Shown one piece after another: positions 1,031 to 11,790 of a stretch of 64,000 bases of DNA. The translations under genes were made by a program, and so were the position numbers. A model generated the notes under the pieces. That model had not been told where the DNA came from and did not search any database. It was given only the letters and a program-made list of their open reading frames with translations. Location: the NCBI GenBank assembly GCA_002269645.1, contig NIVC01002226.1, positions 1-64,000 on the forward strand, given 5' to 3'. Every line of letters begins with the position of its first letter. Position 1 is the stretch's first letter. Origin of the DNA: Macrostomum lignano. Taxonomy: Eukaryota.

Positions 1031-2330
1031 ATGGTTAGCGGCCCGTCCTCTGTCGAGTCGGATAAAACACTCGAACAACATGCTCGCGATCGGACGCAGG
1101 AGGAGCTTGATAATGGACCGCTGGACACCAACTATGCTTTGCCCGAAGATATCGATGACGCCATGCTGGAGGAGCTGATGAGCACCGAGCCTGATTTAAA
1201 CAGGCTGGAGGCTGCGATTTCCGAGTTGGAACGCTCAGCAGAGAACGCCAGTAGCAGACAGCAAGCCGAATGTTATGTAAAAAAAGCTGAACACGTTCAT
1301 GGATGAACATCCCGAGGTTAGTTGCTTCGAAATCAGATATCCTGTGGTTTCAGTTAATCTTTGTATTCTACATGCTTTGAATTCAGATTTTCTATAGGTC
1401 TTTTCGTCAATTCTTGTATTGCTTTTGAACGTCGTAACTTTTTAGGCCCGTGTCGATCTGCAAACCAATTCCGCTGAGGCCATTGCATCTGCACTACGGT
1501 TGTTCTATGGAACCTTCAGGAAGCGTGACGGCAACCTTCCGGCATCGTCTACTCTGATTTGTATGCGAGCGGCATTGTACCGACATCTGATGAAGACCAG
1601 GCGAATGAATATCATTTCCGACAGAGAGTTCTCTAATGCCAATGCGACCTTGAAAGCACTGGCTCGTAGTTTCATCAGTGCAGGTGGCAGATCTAAACAT
1701 TTTGAAGACCTGGAGGAGGACGATTTGCGCAAACTGGCCGCTTACTTCAGCAGAGAATATCCGACGGCGTTGTTGCACGAAGTATATTACAACTGCATCT
1801 ATTACTTTGGAAATCCGGGACGCGAGTGGCGTCGCTGAATCAGTGAGAACAGCTTTATCTTTGAGAAGAGGCCCGACGGAGCGGAGGTTGTGCGGCTTAG
1901 GCTTGGCAAAGTTAAGAATGTAGGCAACAGCCTCAACCGAGAAGCGTGCGATGACTACAAGAACGCGGTGATGGTCTCAATCGCAGAAAAGTGCCCAGTC
2001 GAGGCACTAAAGATGTATCTACGTAAGCAAAGCGAGTCGATTTCTAGCAGCAGCTCTGGTGCTACTCCAGGCACGCCTTTCTTTTTGAAGCCAAAAGTTT
2101 CCAACTGGAAAACGTCTAATTGGTACTGTGCTAAACAGCCTGTCGGTGTCAACACCTTGGCGAGTCTCATGTCGACCATTTCACAAGCTGCTGGACTTAG
2201 TCGTCGGTTCACCGCCCACTGCGTGCGTCCAACAGTTGTGAAAGAACTCGCCGATGATAGCTTCTTAAATGCTGACATTTGCAAGATCACCGGCCAAAAA
2301 AGCACACGAACGGTAGAGCGCTATCTAATG
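1031..2330 (+). pseudogene. Decayed Crypton-type (DUF3504-like) tyrosine recombinase, N-terminal and catalytic part
   Basis: Spliced model 1031-1316 (donor GTTAGT 1317) + 1446-2330. It reads LRLFYGTFRKRDG..STLICMRAALYRHL, DREFSNAN, FGNPGRE, P.G.NTLASLM, FTAHCVR, KITGQKSTRTVERY, typical of Crypton/DUF3504 recombinases. Disablements: +1 frameshift in A7 (1279-1285), in-frame TGA at 1836, and the RRGRE-like Arg and TGHK-like His replaced. Confidence 0.8.
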
Positions 2331-3109
2331 TTTCTGCGAAATACTACGACATGGTTAACAAATGATAATACATTTAATGCACGCTTTTATCATATAAAAT
2401 CCAATTGCTTATTTTATTGACCTTTAATGGGCGCCCTGGCAGCAAGGAATCAATAGTCTATGGTACAACTACTTCTATACCGGGACCAATAAATCATTTA
2501 ATGGTAGATTGTATAGTATCGTAGCGCACGAGTGTCTATGGCCATTATTCAACGAAGTTGCATACTATACAAGTGCATTGTATCTATACTTTTAACTCAG
2601 CGCGCAGTCATTGTGTCATGCTGTACGCTCATTATTCCATGCTTAGGAGTCATTATTTTAGGCTTCTAAAAATACATTCATGAGACAATGTGTTTGTGTA
2701 TATGGTTTTGTCATAGACAATGATAAATTTTAGTCACTCAGTGGCTTCGCCACTCGTGAAAATTTTATCATTGTCTACCTCCAAAACCATATACACAATC
2801 TATCATTATTCCACACTTTTGCGGCCATTATTCCACACTTTTGTCGCGGTCATTATTCCATACTTTTTATCATGCTTCAATTGGCTGTTTTAAGAGTTGT
2901 TTTACCCATAGACGACTGAGTTGTGTGGCTTAGTTTGACCATAGACAACACTGTGAGTGCTGATTTTGCTTGCGTCTTGCAAGAAATCGAGTAGTGAGGA
3001 AGTATGAGGAAAGCGAGTAGTGGGAGAAAAAGCTATTTGTCTTGTCGAACAACTATGGCTATAGTGCATCTCGTCAAACAGCCGCGCTTATTAATTGAAA
3101 AAATCTTCC

Positions 3110-3535: not shown

Positions 3536-5139
3536 TGAACTGCACTAGCTGTGACATTTATTATTAACTCTTTTCGTGTAGCTGGTACTTTAGTTTTAAT
3601 GATTTTTCCTTTTTGTTCATTTACTTCTTGTTGTTCTGTATTTATTAACAAAAATACTGAGCGATGGATTTTTTCAATCCAAATGTCTATGGTACACATC
3701 AAAACTGTGGAATAATGGCCAAAATATTTTTTCATTGCGTCTGGGTAAAAGTATAATTACAATGGTCTTCAAACGGAGCCCATTAAATGATTTATTGGTT
3801 TCGGGAAAGACCGGGTGTACCATAGACTAATAAACAATTAATGTGTATTTGATAGAAAACGAGAAAAACAGAAAACGAATAACGCATAACTCATGCTTCT
3901 TCTCAATAGCTTCCATGCTTAAAAAAAGTCTGCACGTACTTACTTAATCAGGATTTTAATTTTAGGACCATCAATGACGATAGACTTCACACTGCGTTCA
4001 GCAGAGTACTTTTTGGTCCTCTCCTTTGGTCCTCTGCTTTTTGGTTGGCGTGAGATGGGGAGTGACCATAGACTATAGGATTTAATGCACGCTTTTCGAC
4101 ATTGCAATTGTGTAACAATCATCTTAGATTAAATTGCAATAAATGCGCGTAAACCCAAATGAACTGCAAAAAGCTATAGTACTGAAGAGCGAAAACGATC
4201 AAAATACTGTTGTGTTTTTTCAAATGCAACTGTCTTCTTTTCTTTTAAATGCATTGCGCTAAATGAGGTTTTGCCATAGACAAATTAGAAAGCTTTAGAT
4301 TAGAAGTCCTTGACATGCATGCAGCCAGTATAGGTGACGTAGAACTTTTACGTGTAGCAAATTTCCGACGGTGAGAAAGTAAGCCGGGTGCACAACAACT
4401 GCCTGCAGTGACACTTGTCAGTACCTGTCCAAGTGAAACCCCACCGAAAGAATCACCATCGACCCCCCTACCCGCAGAGAATCGCCTCCTCAACTCCCCC
4501 CCCCACCCGCAGAGAAGCGCCCTCGACTATTCATCCTACGACTCAATGTAGCTCAATGTAGTTAAGCCTTATACGACATTTGGCTTGCGATCCCGTTGCT
4601 GCAGTAAGAGTGATTGCATGTTATGGTTATTGCCACTTTTTCTAGCAATTTTCGTGCAAATAAGAAAGACAGGGCCGCTGTGTATGCATCCGTATGCTTG
4701 AGCGGTCTCAGGGTCATGTGAATGGCATGCATGGCAGCTTGGGTTTTAGCTGACTGCGGGTCTATTAGTCACTCTGATCTGCTGTAGTATCAAACCCCCC
4801 CCCGCCGGACAACTTCAAAGTCAGTAAATTTATTAGTCAACTACTCACTGATGCGGCTTGAAATAGTCGATATATAATGACTTGATTGATGACTATTGAT
4901 GTGGCTAATTAGCTAAAATATTTTGCGGAATAAAAATAAATAATTAAATAACTTTGCAGCCACTGGCTGGACCAAATCCATTGCTGACTTACCGGGGAGC
5001 CTGCTACACCTAACGGGAGAGAACACAAAGTTGGCAGCCATAGGCTATATAGGGAGCTCAGCAGCTCAGCAAATAGGCTATATAGACAGAAAGATAATAC
5101 TAGCTTCCATTTTAGCTGCATCCCAGACGAACCCCAGCG

Positions 5140-8100
5140 ATGAGCAGCGAACCCGCTGACCAGCATGAGCTGAGCTCACCTGTCAAGCAGTTCTGCAGCT
5201 ACACAAGTGCTCACGGACTGGGCAGATTCTCTGAGCAGTCCAGCTTCATCGGCAGGTCACTATGGCTCACTTTTCTGCTGGCTACCTACAGCGGGTTCGG
5301 CTACCACCTGTACACCCTGTTCGACAGGTACCAGCAGGCTCCGGTGTTAACAACAATAACGGTGTCCACTCTGCCGTACCAGTTCCCGGATGTGTACATC
5401 TGCCCGACTCACGCCGTCACCATGAGTAGAATTGTTCCGATGCTGTCGACATCGGATATTTACAATGTAGAGCTCGGCTCTAAGAGTAACACAAGCGAAA
5501 AAATCAAACTTTACGACTTTGATTTGTCTAAATCGGAAACTCTTTTTTTTAACAAGCCGACGCAAGCGTTTTTGATTGCATTGGAGCAAACTGAATCAGC
5601 CGTGATGAGCCAACTGAAACTGCTAGTAAAGTGTAAGCTGCCTTGAAAGTTCTAAATTTATGTTTGCTTCCTTCTACAACCTGCGAATTTGTGTAGTTAA
5701 GCTTCACCTCGGGTCCTTCGAGATTTACTTAGCTTTAGAGATCGACCTGACACCTCCACGACTAAGCTTAGATATCCACTTGGCACCTGCAAGACTGTAA
5801 GCATCTAAAGATCCCCATAACCCCGGTAGAAGCTACAGTACTGAGACTAAAAGTCGGTTTATACATTGAATAACTCGTACTTACAGCTGCTTTTCTACGA
5901 GACGAACTCAGCAGTGACTATAAATTCTTGAAATTAATTTTAAGCGATGTATTTCCAGCATTATAAATGCGTGAAAATAGATTTTCCCGCAAAAATGCGA
6001 GTCAAAACAATTTTTTGCAGCAAAAAATAAAAGCTCCGACTGTAGGAGAAGTCTCGACGGAAGTAACTACCTTGGAAACGCAAGCTATGCAGTTGTCTAT
6101 GGGCCATCTAGTATTACGATTGATCCTTCCGATTCAAAAACACTTGGAAACTATTCGGTTAAGCCACCTGTACAGCCCTACGTGATCTACAAGCAGTGCA
6201 TGCGATGGAATGATGCAGCACGCATGCTGCAGAGAGGGAGCTCGAATGCTGAAGTACTGGGTGGCTTGCTGATGAAACTCAACTTCTCAGAGACTGAGTC
6301 CAGGTGCCGCTTACCTCCGGGTTTGCCGCTGACAGAGTTTCTCCCAATTGCAACTCGTAAGTGACTGACTTAGCGAGTGAGTGAGTGAGTGACTGACTGA
6401 CTGACTGACTGACTGACTGACTGACTGACTGACTGACTGACTGACTGACTGACTGACTGACTGACTGACTGACTGACTGACTGACTGACTGACTGACTGA
6501 CTGACTGACTGACTGACTGACTGACTGACTGACTGACTGACTGACTGACTGACTGACTGACTGACTGACTGACTGACTGACTGACTGACTGACTGACTGA
6601 CTGACTGACTGACTGACTGACTGACTGACTGACTGACTGGCTGACTGACTGACTGACTGACTGACTGACTGACTGACTGACTGACTGACTGACTGACTGA
6701 CTGGCTGACTGACTGGCTGACTGACTGACTGACTGACTGACTGACTGACTGACTGACTGGCTGACTGACTGGCTGACTGACTGACTGACTGACTGACTGA
6801 CTGACTGACTGGCTGACTGACTGACTGACTGACTGACTGACTGACTGACTGACTGACTGACTGACTGACTGACTCTCTCACTCTTGAACTGACGCACTCC
6901 ATGCGCTCACACAGGACCCAGACGGGAAATAATTGGCTGCTTCCCAGTGACAGCGGACACGGCTTTCAACATCACGTGCTACAGCGGAGGCCTGGAGGCC
7001 TTTGAGCCGTGCGCCCAGTGCTGCGACAAGTTCAACGCTCCGTTTGCAGCGCTGCTGAACCGCGGCGACTGCCTCTGCGGCAGCTCCGAGGCCGCTGCCA
7101 CTCTGGCCGACGGGAGCTGGACCAGCTGCGACAGGCAGTGCGGCAACAGCAAAACGGAGCCATGCGGATCAGACAGGACCGCTGCTGTTATGATCATCCG
7201 GGATGTTGGTTTGTGTGCTGAATATACTCTAATTAATAAAGCTAATTAGTTTCTCCATCAGCTTTAATCCGTGACTTCTTTTAGAAGACAAACCAATGCA
7301 TATTGGAAGGTTTGGTCAATTGGAAGCTTATTCAGGCGGACCCTACTGCTTCTTCATGGACTCTGAAAGACTAAACGCTGGCTTGTGCGACGTCCCTTAC
7401 TGCGGTGAGTCAATGGTGTTGATTACAGCCAAAGCAGTCGAAGAAGCTAGTATTCATTCCGTTCACTGAGACATCAATTTAGGGCTGGTGAAAGAAACTT
7501 CGGTAGCTTAGGCGATTCTCTGCGGGTGGCCTGTTGCGAACTATCTAACAAACTAACGCAGCACATTACAGCCGCTACTAAAGAGTTCGACTGCGCCGTG
7601 AGCAAAAATGCCGGAGCGAATGTGGTGTACACTGGTCGGACGAACTGGACAGAGTCGGGCCGGGACTGTTTGCCTTGGAGTAGCGTGGAGAACGTGCAGA
7701 TGAAGATGAAACTCAATAAAGGTTTGTACGTTTCTGAACTTTCTAATCTCTGCTAGGGAAAACAATTTCTTCAATTTTTTGTACTCGGTTGGAAACTAGC
7801 AAACCAAAAATGGCACTAACGAACTAGGGAAAGAAACATTTTGAAGGCCGATTGTTCAAGTGATTTGCTGGTGCTATTTTTGGTATCCGTTTTAGTTTCA
7901 CACCTAGGGAGTGGATGGAGTAAGACTATCTAGCTACGATCTTATTAGCAAGAAAGCACACACCCACTATCTTAAAACAGCAACTTTTCATTCGTCTGAA
8001 TGGATGTTTTTAAATCAACATGCACGTGAAGTGAACCCAATGCGCCGAACTATAGTTGATAAATATTGCATTTCAGGTGTTCGCTTTGTTGAAAAACTGC

Positions 8101-10988
8101 TGCGACTAAAGATTCAAACCCCCGACCGTATTGGGAACACCAGCGACAACTTTTGTCGTCCAGTGAGCATAGTTATTGACCTAGCGGAAACTGAGAACGG
8201 CACCTTCACGTGAGTTTCACTAGCCTCATTTTTTGCAAGCAGCTGTAGAACGACTGCATCTCATTTTTAACATCACTTTCAGACGGCACCCAGTGTTAAT
8301 CTCCAATTCTCCCGTCTGCTTTGCCGATCCATCTCTGCTGCACACAATGTCGGTACCAATTTTTCAAACTCAGTTTTTTGAGATGGCATTCGAACGCTGC
8401 ACAATTCCTACTTGTTGTAAGTCGGAGCCTAAAAGTTGTTAAAACTATAAATTCTGAGCTTCACGCATTGCCTGTCGGCACAAAAATTTCAGCTGCTGAA
8501 ACCAGCGTCAGAGGCGTCTTCACTGACTCGGTCGGCAGCCACCTGCTCGCCAGGCAGTTCAGCAACGACCTCAGCATCGGCCTGGCCGACTGCACCTTCG
8601 CTGGCCAGAAATGCACCAAGGAGCACTTCGTCAATATCGACCATCCGCAGCTGGGAATGTGCCACCAGTTTCTCAAGCAGAGCTTCATCGCCAACATGTC
8701 GAGCACCCAGCTAGCAGGGAGTCAGCTGTCAATAACGTACTTCACCGACTCCACAGACTCTAAAGGGAAAACAGTCGAGGACATGCCCGAAATGACCAGT
8801 GCGTTTCATAACGGTATGAGCTTGGAGATCAGCGACCTGGCTTTCAAGGTAAGCGGTGTGTTTTTGATAGAGGAATCACAATCCGGATGTGAAAGTGCAC
8901 AATGAGATATCATTTGCGAATCAGTAAAGGCACACAAGGAAAGTTGATCGAGGTGTAGTCATTAAAAATTTTTGCACCGAATCATAAAAATGACTGAAGT
9001 CAAAGACAAAAACACACAAAACTGTACACTAAAAACTCAAAAGCGAGAGCTAAGCTAACCCTGAGGTAACAAAAAAGTTACATCCAGAAAGTCAATGCAG
9101 ACTTGACTGAACCTACCTTGGAAAGACTTAGAAAGCATGTTTCTTTTATTTTGTGCCAAAATGCGAAACATTTTAAAAAATTCAAATGAAATTGTCAAAT
9201 GTCTCAAATGATTGTAAAATAAGAAGTCTAGTGCAGAAACCCCACGTAAATCCAAAACTATTACCACAACCTTCCACTCCTAGGCGATCATTGTTCCGGA
9301 AGACTCGTTCCCCTGGTCGTCCAAGGGCATCGACGTGGCCGCCTCCCAACGCATGGACGTGCAGCTCAGGTTCGAAAGATACTCCAGACTCTCAACTGCA
9401 TCGAGGCCGTGCCTAGAGACCACCGAGCCAATTGTATATCGACTGCCGTCATGGAAGAAGTCCATGTCAAACGAAGACCTAAAGTAGGTAACTTTCTTCA
9501 GTGACATTAAATTTTCTTGAAAATTGCCTACGGCAAATTAAAGCAGAAGGTTTCAATGGCTCCTTTGAACTGAATTAAACATTCTTCAGAATGGAGGAAG
9601 CTGCAGAGTTGGTCGGCCACTCTGAGAATTGGTCTGAGATGATCAGAAGACTCCGGGCGATGCTGCTACTGCCGAACAGTTCAAGGTCAGTGCTTGAGAA
9701 ATAATTGCGTTGAGCTTTAGCTAGCATCGAAGGTACGAGCGTAGAACAGATAAAAGTGCATGATATTTCACTGGTCATAACTTAACGTTTATCCAGCGTT
9801 CTGACTGCCACTGAGCGACAGTTCAACGTCTCCGGTAGAGAGGATTGCATCAATTCGTACATTGTACAGCAGTTCATCGAAAACTGCAACTGTTTACCGT
9901 CGATTCTGCCAGTCAAGGTGGACTTATTCGACCAGTACAGCTACTGTTTCGACGCCAAGGACATCGGCAACTTGTCTATCGATCTTGAGATACGGTACAA
10001 TGAGCAGGTATCGCGGATAAACCAGTACGAGTTTGAGGCGATGAAGCGCTGTCAGTCTCCGTGTCGGACAGACGGCTACAGTGTCCGTTACGTCACTTAT
10101 CCGTGGCCTAACTTGAAGACTGCCAGATCCACTCTGCTATTGCAGAAGCTTGCAAGCAACTACGGCTACCGGACCAGCGTTAGCGGTCTTAGAGGTGTAG
10201 CCAATTTCTACCAAGCGTACTTGAAGTCACTTAGCCTCACCGGGGTGCCTTTTGCCAATCAGAGCGCCAAGGACATTCTGGGCTTCGAAAAAGAGCTCGA
10301 GTCGCTGCAGAACCGCCTGGCCAGACTGACAGTTCAGGCGTGGACCTCCGAAGGTCAGGAGATCACCGAAGAGGAGGCCTACCCTACCAAGAATCTCGTT
10401 GCAGACATAGGAGGAAATCGTTCATATTTTACGAGCATGCGTTTCGAATCAGATCACGGTGTGGTAAAAATTAAAAGCAATAAAATGCACCGAAACTTCG
10501 TCAAAAAGTTTCTGAAAATTTTCCCAAAGCTTTTGCAGCGTTGAGTTTCAGTCCAATGCGATCTCAAAGCGGAAGCAAGTCGGGAGAACTAAAACAAAAC
10601 TTGCACCTATAGAGTCCAGTACAGGCCAGTTCCTAGGGGTTGTAAAAGCTACTTCAGAGTGACCTATACACTATGATTTCACTTCGGTATCGATCGCAAA
10701 AATTTAATTCGAATTGTTTGCTACGTAGAGACGTAGACAATCGAATTCCCACTTAGAATCGTAAACGATTTTTTTCAATCTACAGGCGCCTTGGGTCTCT
10801 GGTCAGGCGTCTCGATTCTGACTGTCTGCGAGGTGGTCGAGCTGCTCATCTACATTAGCCAAAGGCTCGCAGCGAAATTGCGACAGAGGCCCAGCGCATC
10901 CGAGGGTTGCTCAGCAGCTGGTAGCAATGAACTCAAGGATTCCGAGGTACATGGCCCCAACGAGGCGGACATAATGACCGCTTTCTGA
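5140..10988 (+). CDS. DEG/ENaC (ASIC/FaNaC-like) sodium channel subunit with extracellular kringle-WSC-kringle insertion, ~1,043 aa
   Basis: Exons 5140-5632, 6021-6356, 6915-7208, 7285-7404, 7572-7721, 8077-8209, 8283-8416, 8493-8848, 9284-9483, 9590-9685, 9797-10413, 10786-10988 are phase-compatible (3,132 nt). Motifs: TSAHG pre-TM1, TM1, FPDVYIC, CTFAGQKC..HPQLGMCHQF, thumb C..CNC and CQSPC..Y..WP, TM2 ADIGGALGLWSGVSILTVCE (GxS filter). AATAAA at 11045. The last donor is non-canonical. Confidence 0.93.
6362..6874. repeat. (GACT)n microsatellite in channel intron 2
   Basis: Direct reading; it produces the SQSV antisense ORFs. Confidence 0.98.
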
Positions 10989-11414
10989 GCGGTTTTTTTT
11001 AGCTTAAACAGTTTGAATTTCCAAATGCCCTAAAACAGAGATACAATAAAAGAGCTAGAATGAGCTAGAATCTAATGATCTCTGAAGTACATGTACAATC
11101 CACAAGCCTAAGTACACACATTGTTTGAGAAATGTTAATGTGTTTGAAAACTTCAAGTCAATACTTTAATATTTAAATGAAACTGACGTGCATATTTACT
11201 GGCTTTATATATTATTAAAATAATTTTATTTACGTTAAATTTTTATACTTATATTTGTTAATTTTGTTATACATGTAGCGTTCAGTTCACTGATTTACTG
11301 CAGTAGTCACTCTGCGTCTGCACCGTAATCCGATAATTTATGCACGGATTATTTTGAAGAATAAACTGTTCAGTAGATGAAAGCGTTTTGAAGCGAAATC
11401 ACCCCCTCCCAATT

Positions 11415-11790
11415 TAAAGACTTGACTTACTTTCGTCACTTGACTTAGCTTCAGAGGTCTCTGGGCAGCTTGTGTTTCGGTGTCGGGAGATCCGGTGGTG
11501 CTGGTGCCGACGCGAGTTAAATGGTCGCTCGCCCAGTAGCCCTTAGCCTTTAAATAGCGAACTGCAGAAATTCCCGGGCCTGTAAACGTCCGGGTTTGGG
11601 CCGAGGTAGGTGAGCCTGTCCTGAGTAAAGGCTGGGGGGCATTCACAGATGAAGTGATTCGTATTCTCAACATCGGAGAGGCAAAATGGGCATTCTTAAC
11701 TGCGGAATTTTCCCTAGAGGTAGCGATGTCTAGAAAATCAGCCATGGCTTGAGAGGGGATCCCTTAAAGGCAGTTCCATCAGATATGGAC
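11415..11790 (-). mobile_element. Degenerate 3' fragment of a non-LTR retrotransposon (R1/LOA/I-like C-terminal zinc knuckle)
   Basis: The minus strand reads ECPFCLSDVENTNHFICECPPAFTQDRLTYLG (C-x2-C..E..H...C..R..LG pattern of LINE ORF2 ends), flanked by stops and frameshifts. Confidence 0.5.

Follow-up and report, generated by a model that had tools for sequence, protein, structure and literature searches.

The genomic stretch considered here, hereafter the window, comprises positions 1 to 64,000 on the forward strand of contig NIVC01002226.1 in the Macrostomum lignano assembly GCA_002269645.1. At 5140-10988 on the plus strand it contains a gene predicted to encode an ion channel subunit of the DEG/ENaC superfamily, in which a WSC domain and two diverged kringles appear to be built into the extracellular finger region. 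The gene was rebuilt independently from positions 4500-11500, translated in all frames, and consists of 12 exons, with GT-AG boundaries at every intron and phases that are consistent throughout. The coding sequence of 3,138 nucleotides (nt) specifies 1,045 amino acids (aa), its sole stop codon being the terminal one at 10986-10988, and all 12 exons are open, free of frameshifts and premature stops. A first-pass annotation of this DNA had proposed a phase-consistent 12-exon model of about 1,043 aa; that model was recovered with little change, and all the motifs quoted in it are present in the order given. Only one copy of the channel was found in the window by tblastn.

The predicted protein has the general organization of a DEG/ENaC subunit. 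The Pfam ASC profile (PF00858) matches it with 139 bits against a cut-off of 23.6 (3e-40), in three stretches that are split by the insert described below. The hallmarks of the superfamily are in place, namely the AHGLG motif at aa 24-28, a first transmembrane segment (TM1), FPDVYIC at aa 82-88, and a second transmembrane segment (TM2) with LGLWSGVSILT at aa 980-990, including the GxS filter. The N-terminus encoded by exon 1 can be aligned with those of the paralogues, and this region matches the N-terminal parts of FaNaC, ASIC5 and PPK26. When a family profile of the core without the insert was compared with PDB, the best match was the Aplysia FaNaC (7yvb, 2.6e-20), followed by a second FaNaC, ASIC5, ENaC-gamma, PPK26 and ASIC1. 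On these matches the locus reads as one protein-coding gene for a DEG/ENaC subunit, whose closest relatives of solved structure are the FMRFamide-gated FaNaCs. With FaNaC (7yvb, 8on7) and the wider superfamily of ASIC, ENaC, PPK and degenerins it shares the two-transmembrane topology, the HG motif, FPxVxIC, palm and thumb cysteines and LGLWxGxS in TM2, the GG-x-LGLWxGxS form of this signature being that of the paralogues, whereas the additional residues in its finger set it apart from all of them. The channel core is very divergent, and in a word-indexed search only M. lignano proteins reached E-values of 1e-5 or below; conservation across the family is high in LGLWSGVS, the region of the pore and the selectivity filter.

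The finger is the part of the DEG/ENaC extracellular domain that senses peptides in FaNaC, protons or toxins in ASIC and proteases in ENaC. Exons 2 to 7 encode a cysteine-rich insert of approximately 390 residues (aa 165-554), placed some 30 residues upstream of the FaNaC C-x-F-x4-C motif, after a predicted finger helix and before the helix 'VGSHLLARQF'; by this alignment the insert is assigned to the finger region. It contains 22 cysteines (6 + 10 + 6), an even number, and eight N-glycosylation sequons, features in keeping with an extracellular module whose cysteines are all in disulfide bonds, and it has no additional hydrophobic segment. Exons 2, 3, 4 and 5 are each of phase 1-1, exons 6 and 7 are so jointly, exon 1 ends and exon 8 begins in phase 1, and phase-1 borders of this kind, as read from the gene structure, are a classic signature of shuffled extracellular modules. 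The WSC exon is nested within kringle 1 (K1) in all paralogues, with Cys3 of the kringle (SRCRLP) in exon 2, the WSC domain in exon 3 and Cys4 (GPYCF) in exon 4, and kringle 2 (K2) follows, an arrangement abbreviated here as K1(WSC)-K2. The first-pass annotation had set the WSC domain between two kringles; the chimera itself was upheld, being conserved across divergent paralogues and present in transcript-derived models, and the placement of the WSC domain had to be revised. Exon positions and contents are collected in Table 1.

Table 1. Features of the channel gene in window coordinates.
Feature	Position	Strand	Content
Exon 1	5140-5632	+	Start codon, cytoplasmic N-terminus (HG motif, AHGLG), TM1, FPDVYIC, first finger helix; ends in phase 1
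Exon 2	6021-6356	+	Phase 1-1; N-terminal part of K1: Cys1 C172 (C-x5-G-x2-Y-x-G-N), Cys2 C224 (QCMRW), Cys3 C260 (SRCRLP), long loop insertions
Intron 2 microsatellite	6362-6874		(TGAC)n, about 128 copies, 96% pure, occupying most of intron 2
Exon 3	6915-7208	+	Phase 1-1; whole WSC domain, 10 Cys, within the Cys3-Cys4 loop of K1
Exon 4	7285-7404	+	Phase 1-1; C-terminal part of K1, GGPYC(4)FF...LC(5)DVPYC(6)
Exons 5-7	7572-7721, 8077-8209, 8283-8416	+	Jointly phase 1-1; K2, motifs FDC, YTGRTNWTESGRDCLPWS, NFCRP, PVCF, ERCTIPTC
Exon 8	8493-8848	+	Phase 1 at its start; last helix of the finger, then palm/beta-ball (CTFAGQKC ... GMCHQF); aligns with FaNaC residues 172-241
Exons 9-11	9284-9483, 9590-9685, 9797-10419	+	Palm, thumb cysteines, knuckle, pre-TM2 through ADIGG
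Exon 12	10786-10988	+	TM2 (ALGLWSGVSILTVCEVVELLIY), C-terminal tail, TGA stop
AATAAA	11045-11050	+	Likely polyadenylation signal read from the sequence, 57 nt past the stop codon

The identity of the WSC domain is solid. The WSC exon scored on its own reaches 28.9 bits with the Pfam WSC profile (PF01822; cut-off 27.8) and 23.5 bits within the whole protein, and the WSC domains of the paralogues reach 39-41 bits. A profile of four paralogue domains matched yeast Wsc1 (8.7e-8) and Kremen1 (2.9e-6) in PDB, and an AlphaFold2 (AF2) model of the exon, with a predicted local distance difference test (pLDDT) of 70, was aligned by Foldseek to Wsc1 (7pz2, template-modelling score 0.67) and Kremen1 (0.65) with probability 1.00. 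Wsc1, the best match in both sequence and fold, provides an example of a WSC domain that acts as a surface sensor touching extracellular polysaccharide; it is, however, a fungal single-pass sensor without a channel, and the functional analogy is only suggestive. Kremen1/2 (5fws) also combine a kringle and a WSC domain in one extracellular region, and the WSC domain matches Kremen1 in sequence as well as in fold. The likeness to Kremen receptors evoked at first does not extend to the layout, which in Kremen is a serial kringle (KR)-WSC-CUB arrangement on a single-pass receptor (a Wnt co-receptor), whereas the window protein has its WSC domain inside a kringle, a second kringle, and a two-transmembrane channel as carrier; no CUB domain was matched in it by Pfam. 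A Kremen-derived KR-WSC cassette was considered as the source of the insert and rejected, since order and nesting differ and the WSC domain is, by the E-values above, no closer to Kremen1 than to yeast Wsc1.

K1 and K2 are both best read, from their sequences, as kringle-derived domains that are strongly diverged and carry long loop insertions. Canonical kringles have cysteine spacings of 21/29/12/12/5; the six cysteines of K1 (172, 224, 260, 396, 409 and 414) are spaced 52/36/136/13/5 and those of K2 (422, 447, 491, 521, 548 and 553) 25/44/30/27/5. The signature motifs (C..G..Y.G, C..W, CR.P, GP[WY]C and C.[IV]P.C) are all found in K1 and most of them in K2, where SPVCF replaces GP[WY]C, and both cysteine order and motifs are conserved in the paralogues, with some loops far exceeding canonical length. 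Compared with PDB as a single sequence, K2 gave 21 weak matches, 20 of which are kringles, and of the 55 matches of its family profile, the best at 2.3e-4, nearly all are kringles; apart from designed TPR proteins, the C-terminal half of K1 matched only HGF kringles (HGF kringle 1). The Pfam Kringle profile (PF00051), run over nine proteins, scored 14.8-24.2 bits at the same place in seven family members and did not match the eighth, P0009, the ninth being a bona fide kringle control, the six-kringle ostracod protein P0096 (2e-73). Searched against 1.84 billion proteins, the whole-family profile matches P0096 with an E-value of 3e-16, and the K1 and K2 profiles align with it piecewise yet collinearly, at Cys1-GxxYxG, Cys2-xxW and GPWC...CDIPxC. 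Moreover, a hidden Markov model (HMM) built from five P0096 kringles scored 22.7-30.8 bits on four K1 sequences with the WSC domain excised and 13.7-30.7 bits on five K2 sequences, and none of 1,000 composition-matched shuffles of each of these nine sequences reached the real score, the shuffle maxima being 5.9-14.0 bits.

In canonical kringles, the loop between Cys3 and Cys4 bears the acidic pair of the lysine-binding site. By motif alignment this pair (CRNPDxD) is missing from both K1 and K2, and the tryptophan of GPW is replaced by tyrosine in K1 and by valine in K2. Since these residues are gone, a plasminogen-type lysine pocket is unlikely, as is, on the same alignment, a canonical lysine-binding site of any kind in either domain, and the plasminogen-like ligands put forward in the first-pass annotation were a poor guess.

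The same architecture recurs in a family of M. lignano proteins. The insert alone (aa 165-554), compared with 5.8 billion proteins, gave three matches only, all from M. lignano, and an insert profile likewise found M. lignano proteins only. These three are named 'WSC domain-containing protein' in UniProt and carry both PF01822 and PF00858. P0001 is the UniProt draft model of the window gene, covering exons 1-8 with a shorter exon 4. Searches with the channel part added the full-length paralogues P0004 (1,049 aa, GenBank BOX15_Mlig006056g1) and P0009 (1,052 aa, BOX15_Mlig007204g1), respectively 57% and 36% identical to the window protein, as well as the P0010/P0011 lineage and the P0006-8 lineage, the latter N-terminally truncated and starting inside K2. 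The family profile, run in HMMER without filters against 1.84 billion representative proteins, brought in P0013, P0014/P0157, P0016, P0019/P0163 and P0037, all from M. lignano, and some of the members found in this way are named 'Kringle domain-containing protein' in UniProt. The motif order K1 Cys1-3, WSC, K1 Cys4-6, K2, palm is kept in every lineage of the family alignment, and the layout is common to the window protein, P0004, P0009, P0011, P0013, P0016 and the P0006-8 lineage, that is, to at least seven divergent lineages with identities down to 36%. No close paralogue without the insert was found. Among the best 150 matches from the representative proteins, the layout was not found outside M. 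lignano, and on this search it is not widespread; the other matches checked among these were ordinary DEG/ENaCs, multi-WSC proteins and one multi-kringle protein. At the level of the family, the chimeric protein is very probably real.

Some other M. lignano ASC models (P0086, P0087 and P0044) carry CUB, ZP, UNC-93 or PBPe names or matches, and the N-terminus of P0086 is longer by about 600 residues. Either fused draft models or further acquisitions of domains by DEG/ENaC genes in M. lignano may account for them.

The annotation of assembly GCA_002269645.1 derives from a genome-guided transcriptome, obtained with StringTie/TACO and de novo assembly, with open reading frames (ORFs) called by TransDecoder (PMC5730564). 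P0004 and P0009 are models from this transcript-derived GenBank annotation, and they show the insert exons included in transcript-derived models of the paralogues. P0004 could be mapped exactly to its locus, L001, where the twelve introns have the same place and phase as in the window gene, except that the exon 3/4 junction is displaced by 2 nt, and where there is one small extra 3' exon; the exon map of P0009 on its locus, L002, is broadly similar at the coarse resolution of tblastn.

Comparison of the window gene with P0004 gave, for the insert, a proportion of nonsynonymous differences (pN) of 0.40 and of synonymous differences (pS) of 0.70, with a ratio of nonsynonymous to synonymous rates (dN/dS) of about 0.29, and for the channel core a dN/dS of about 0.24, values that are rough as synonymous sites are near saturation. 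Purifying selection is thus shown to act on the insert. Divergence is unevenly distributed among close paralogues: identity between the window gene and P0003 is 99% over aa 1-103, 50% over 104-216, 90% over 217-373, 46% in K2 and 91% over 557-665. It is the first loops of K1 and the whole of K2 that differ most (46-50%), the flanks, the second half of the N-terminal part of K1 and the WSC domain being 90-99% identical. This distribution suggests the pattern expected of diversifying recognition surfaces, as far as sequence identity can tell, and gene conversion between duplicates could also give it.

No paper coupling kringle or WSC domains with a DEG/ENaC channel was found in searches combining kringle or WSC with ENaC or degenerin, Macrostomum with ENaC, or using Mlig gene identifiers, and the architecture is not mentioned in the accessible portions of phylogenetic studies that include M. 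lignano channels. The first-pass annotation had called it undescribed; this stands as regards the literature, but the architecture is already catalogued automatically in UniProt, as 'WSC' or 'Kringle domain-containing' proteins with PF00858. A precedent is that of the C. elegans subunits EGAS-1 to EGAS-4, which are 'EGF plus ASC' DEG/ENaC proteins and similarly represent channel subunits with acquired extracellular, adhesive-type cysteine-rich modules (PMC10424705). In EGAS, however, the modules are EGF domains and not kringle or WSC domains, and the acquisitions are independent; a Pfam scan of the window protein found no EGF family at E<=1.

As a whole, these data are best explained by a chimeric DEG/ENaC channel with a K1(WSC)-K2 ligand- or matrix-binding module, an interpretation to which a probability of about 0.5 is given. 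In this proposal, the finger has gained six exons, which are set between its helices and the C-x-F-x4-C motif of the palm and encode a disulfide-rich K1(WSC)-K2 unit; given the phase-1 borders of the module and the 1-1 phase of the WSC exon, exon shuffling is the probable route, an intron of K1 having received the WSC exon. Three such modules would project from the top or outer rim of the extracellular domain of the trimeric channel. Each may bind an extracellular glycan or a glycoprotein or matrix partner; free lysine is not the proposed ligand, since both kringles lack the canonical residues for binding it. Ligand occupancy, or tension on a tether, would then reach the thumb/palm gate by way of the finger, with the insert serving as a built-in ligand sensor or mechanical tether. 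The proposal is made because WSC and kringle domains are binding modules and the insert sits in the sensing region, because the best structural match of the WSC domain is that of a fungal cell-surface mechanosensor, and because the first loops of K1 and K2 have diverged between close paralogues. By analogy with these systems, the role of the insert as a ligand- or matrix-binding gating or tethering module is advanced as a tentative suggestion. A more specific form of it, by the same reasoning from analogy, is that these are self-tethered channels, in which K1(WSC)-K2 would bind a glycan or glycoprotein, either from the extracellular matrix or from the adhesive secretion of the worm itself, and pull or occupancy would gate the pore directly, possibly in the adhesive organ, for whose attachment the kringle-bearing membrane protein Tmed-krg1, discussed below, is already required. 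This reading is unlikely as matters stand; if true, it would make the subunit a DEG/ENaC receptor for mechanical stimuli or contact that carries its own extracellular tether.

Several observations weigh against the proposal of a chimeric channel with a binding module, or against parts of it. With regard to the domains, the first-pass annotation had looked to Pfam for their recognition, and this was borne out for ASC and WSC at the scores given above and failed for the kringles: K2 reaches 17.7 bits against 34.3 and covers profile positions 8-35 only, which is below threshold, and the scan of K1 gave no match. A PDB search with the K1 profile gave no match at E<=1, and the hhalign comparison of K1 with K2 is weak (20% probability), with the Cys2-to-Cys3 segments aligned. 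The AF2 prediction for the 658-aa UniProt model, from an alignment of eight sequences, has a pLDDT of 35.5 and is unusable, so that the kringle folds and the nesting are read from sequence. Regarding the transcript, support for the window copy is indirect, coming from models of the paralogues, and is strong at the level of the family. As exon 1 ends and exon 8 begins in the same phase, the frame would survive the skipping of exons 2-7, and phase consistency is hence no proof of their inclusion. In addition, the UniProt models P0002 and P0003, of close relatives, omit exon 4, and P0001 shortens it; exon 4 has two in-frame acceptors, at 7285 (the long form, conserved in P0004, P0009 and P0011) and at 7336 (the short form, used by P0001), and its alternative splicing is possible. 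As to function, binding and gating by the insert are put forward by analogy, and EGAS subunits, which carry EGF modules, gave no currents in oocytes (PMC10424705), which indicates that added modules by themselves reveal no gating mode.

The remaining objections concern the window copy. The donor homologous to that of exon 11 in the paralogues, directly after 10413, reads GA at 10414-10415 in the window and GT in L001 and L002; in the genes for P0004 and P0009, the GT donor directly follows the first base of the second glycine codon of DIGG. The model presented here uses instead a GT at 10420, six bases further on and in frame, a cryptic donor that would yield DIGG-NR-ALGLW, so the spacing before TM2 is GG-NRA-LGLW in the window protein as against DIGG-ALGLW in the paralogues and DIGG-T/Q-LGLW in FaNaC. 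Three explanations of the GA are conceivable: an error in the assembly, a rare GA-AG intron, and a genuine two-residue insertion just before TM2. Also, P0004 and P0009 both keep a thumb cysteine in whose place the window gene (aa 836, 'LEIRYNEQ', about 9990-10000) and P0005 have an arginine, and after this change the core ectodomain has 11 cysteines, an odd number. The altered donor and the lost thumb cysteine lower confidence in the full function of the window copy, not in the family, and it was considered whether the architecture is genuine but the window copy is a decaying duplicate, mis-spliced at exon 11/12 or non-functional. Such a fate would be in keeping with a recently duplicated genome, the assembly is highly redundant (PMC5730564), and both lesions, with the NR that the rescue donor places between GG and ALGLW, are of the sort it calls for. 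Against decay stand the intact reading frame of all 12 exons, the dN/dS of about 0.24-0.29 relative to P0004, the possibility that the GA is an assembly error or the two-residue insertion a tolerated one, and the sharing of the Cys-to-Arg change with P0005, in a sub-lineage, which makes it no private lesion. Decay of the window copy is accordingly held to be doubtful, and the copy probably makes a functional subunit.

The finger of ENaC bears protease-sensitive inhibitory tracts, and the insert might similarly be a regulatory or assembly module, for instance an autoinhibitory finger plug relieved by proteases, like the GRIP domain of ENaC, or an element for folding, trafficking or the sorting of subunits among paralogues. 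Its position in the finger would suit such a role, and the contrast between the diverged K1 first loops and K2 (46-50%) and their conserved flanks (90-99%) would suit paralogue-specific recognition; WSC and kringle domains are, however, classically binding modules, no furin-type or other cleavage motif was found, although no search aimed at such motifs was made, and a purely regulatory or assembly role is given a low probability.

A further alternative is that the protein serves mainly in cell-surface adhesion or anchoring, conduction being secondary or lost, as might be imagined from Tmed-krg1. This flatworm protein of the anchor cells of the adhesive organ contains six kringles, lacks a signal peptide and has intracellular ends on either side of a large extracellular region (Pjeta et al. 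2022, PMC9229212). Its knock-down results in non-adhesive worms, and expression of an M. lignano homologue, RNA815_8153, is located in the anchor cells (PMC9229212). Like the channel family, Tmed-krg1 is thus a flatworm membrane protein that lacks a signal peptide and has kringles in an extracellular region flanked by two intracellular ends, a DEG/ENaC-like topology. On the other hand, it has been set beside the channel family by its published description only, no WSC or ASC domain has been reported for it (PMC9229212), its six regular kringles contrast with the two divergent kringles and WSC domain of the channel protein, and the conserved LGLWSGVS pore and filter region argues for retained conduction. 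A mainly adhesive role seems improbable on this balance.

Finally, that the chimera is a gene-model artefact, exons 2-7 forming a gene of their own within a long intron of an otherwise ordinary channel gene, is very improbable: splicing of exon 1 to exon 8 would keep the frame and the CUB, ZP and UNC-93 names of UniProt M. lignano ASC models suggest that fused drafts occur, but all-frame translation and protein scans showed the insert exons to lack a start codon, a signal peptide and a hydrophobic segment, grounds on which a nested independent gene was rejected, and the same insertion occurs at the same point in every close relative found, N-terminally truncated models included, and in transcript-derived GenBank ORFs, with no insert-less close paralogue among them.

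The remaining sequence in the window includes a large multi-exon gene for a UBR4-type E3 ubiquitin ligase at about 19.7-56.3 kilobases (kb) on the plus strand (Pfam E3_UBR4_N, zf-UBR and E3_UbLigase_R4), whose introns are full of minisatellite and low-complexity repeats that produce long spurious ORFs. Tetranucleotide-type arrays like the (TGAC)n of intron 2 recur in the window, examples being the 'SVCL' and 'TDRQ' ORF artefacts at about 37.5-38.3, 40.8-41.5 and 62-63.6 kb. Upstream of the channel gene, a 176-aa ORF at 1890-2420 (plus strand) has a sub-threshold match to DUF3504 (27.1 bits against 29.7), a domain that occurs in tyrosine-recombinase-derived (Crypton-like) elements, and is probably, by this match, a transposon remnant.

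Taken together, these data describe a real and conserved family of chimeric channels, so far found in M. lignano only and known under automatic names. The nesting of one extracellular domain (WSC) in another (the kringle) by exon insertion is uncommon, and the family exemplifies it. These proteins constitute a natural case of binding domains wired into the finger, and may bear on how mechanosensitive members of the DEG/ENaC superfamily connect to the extracellular matrix; being under selection and diversified among paralogues, they may provide a tractable test of the coupling between finger and gate. Transgenesis and RNA interference are available in M. lignano, which makes expression and loss-of-function tests feasible, and through this family ion channels might be connected with adhesion or surface sensing in flatworms.

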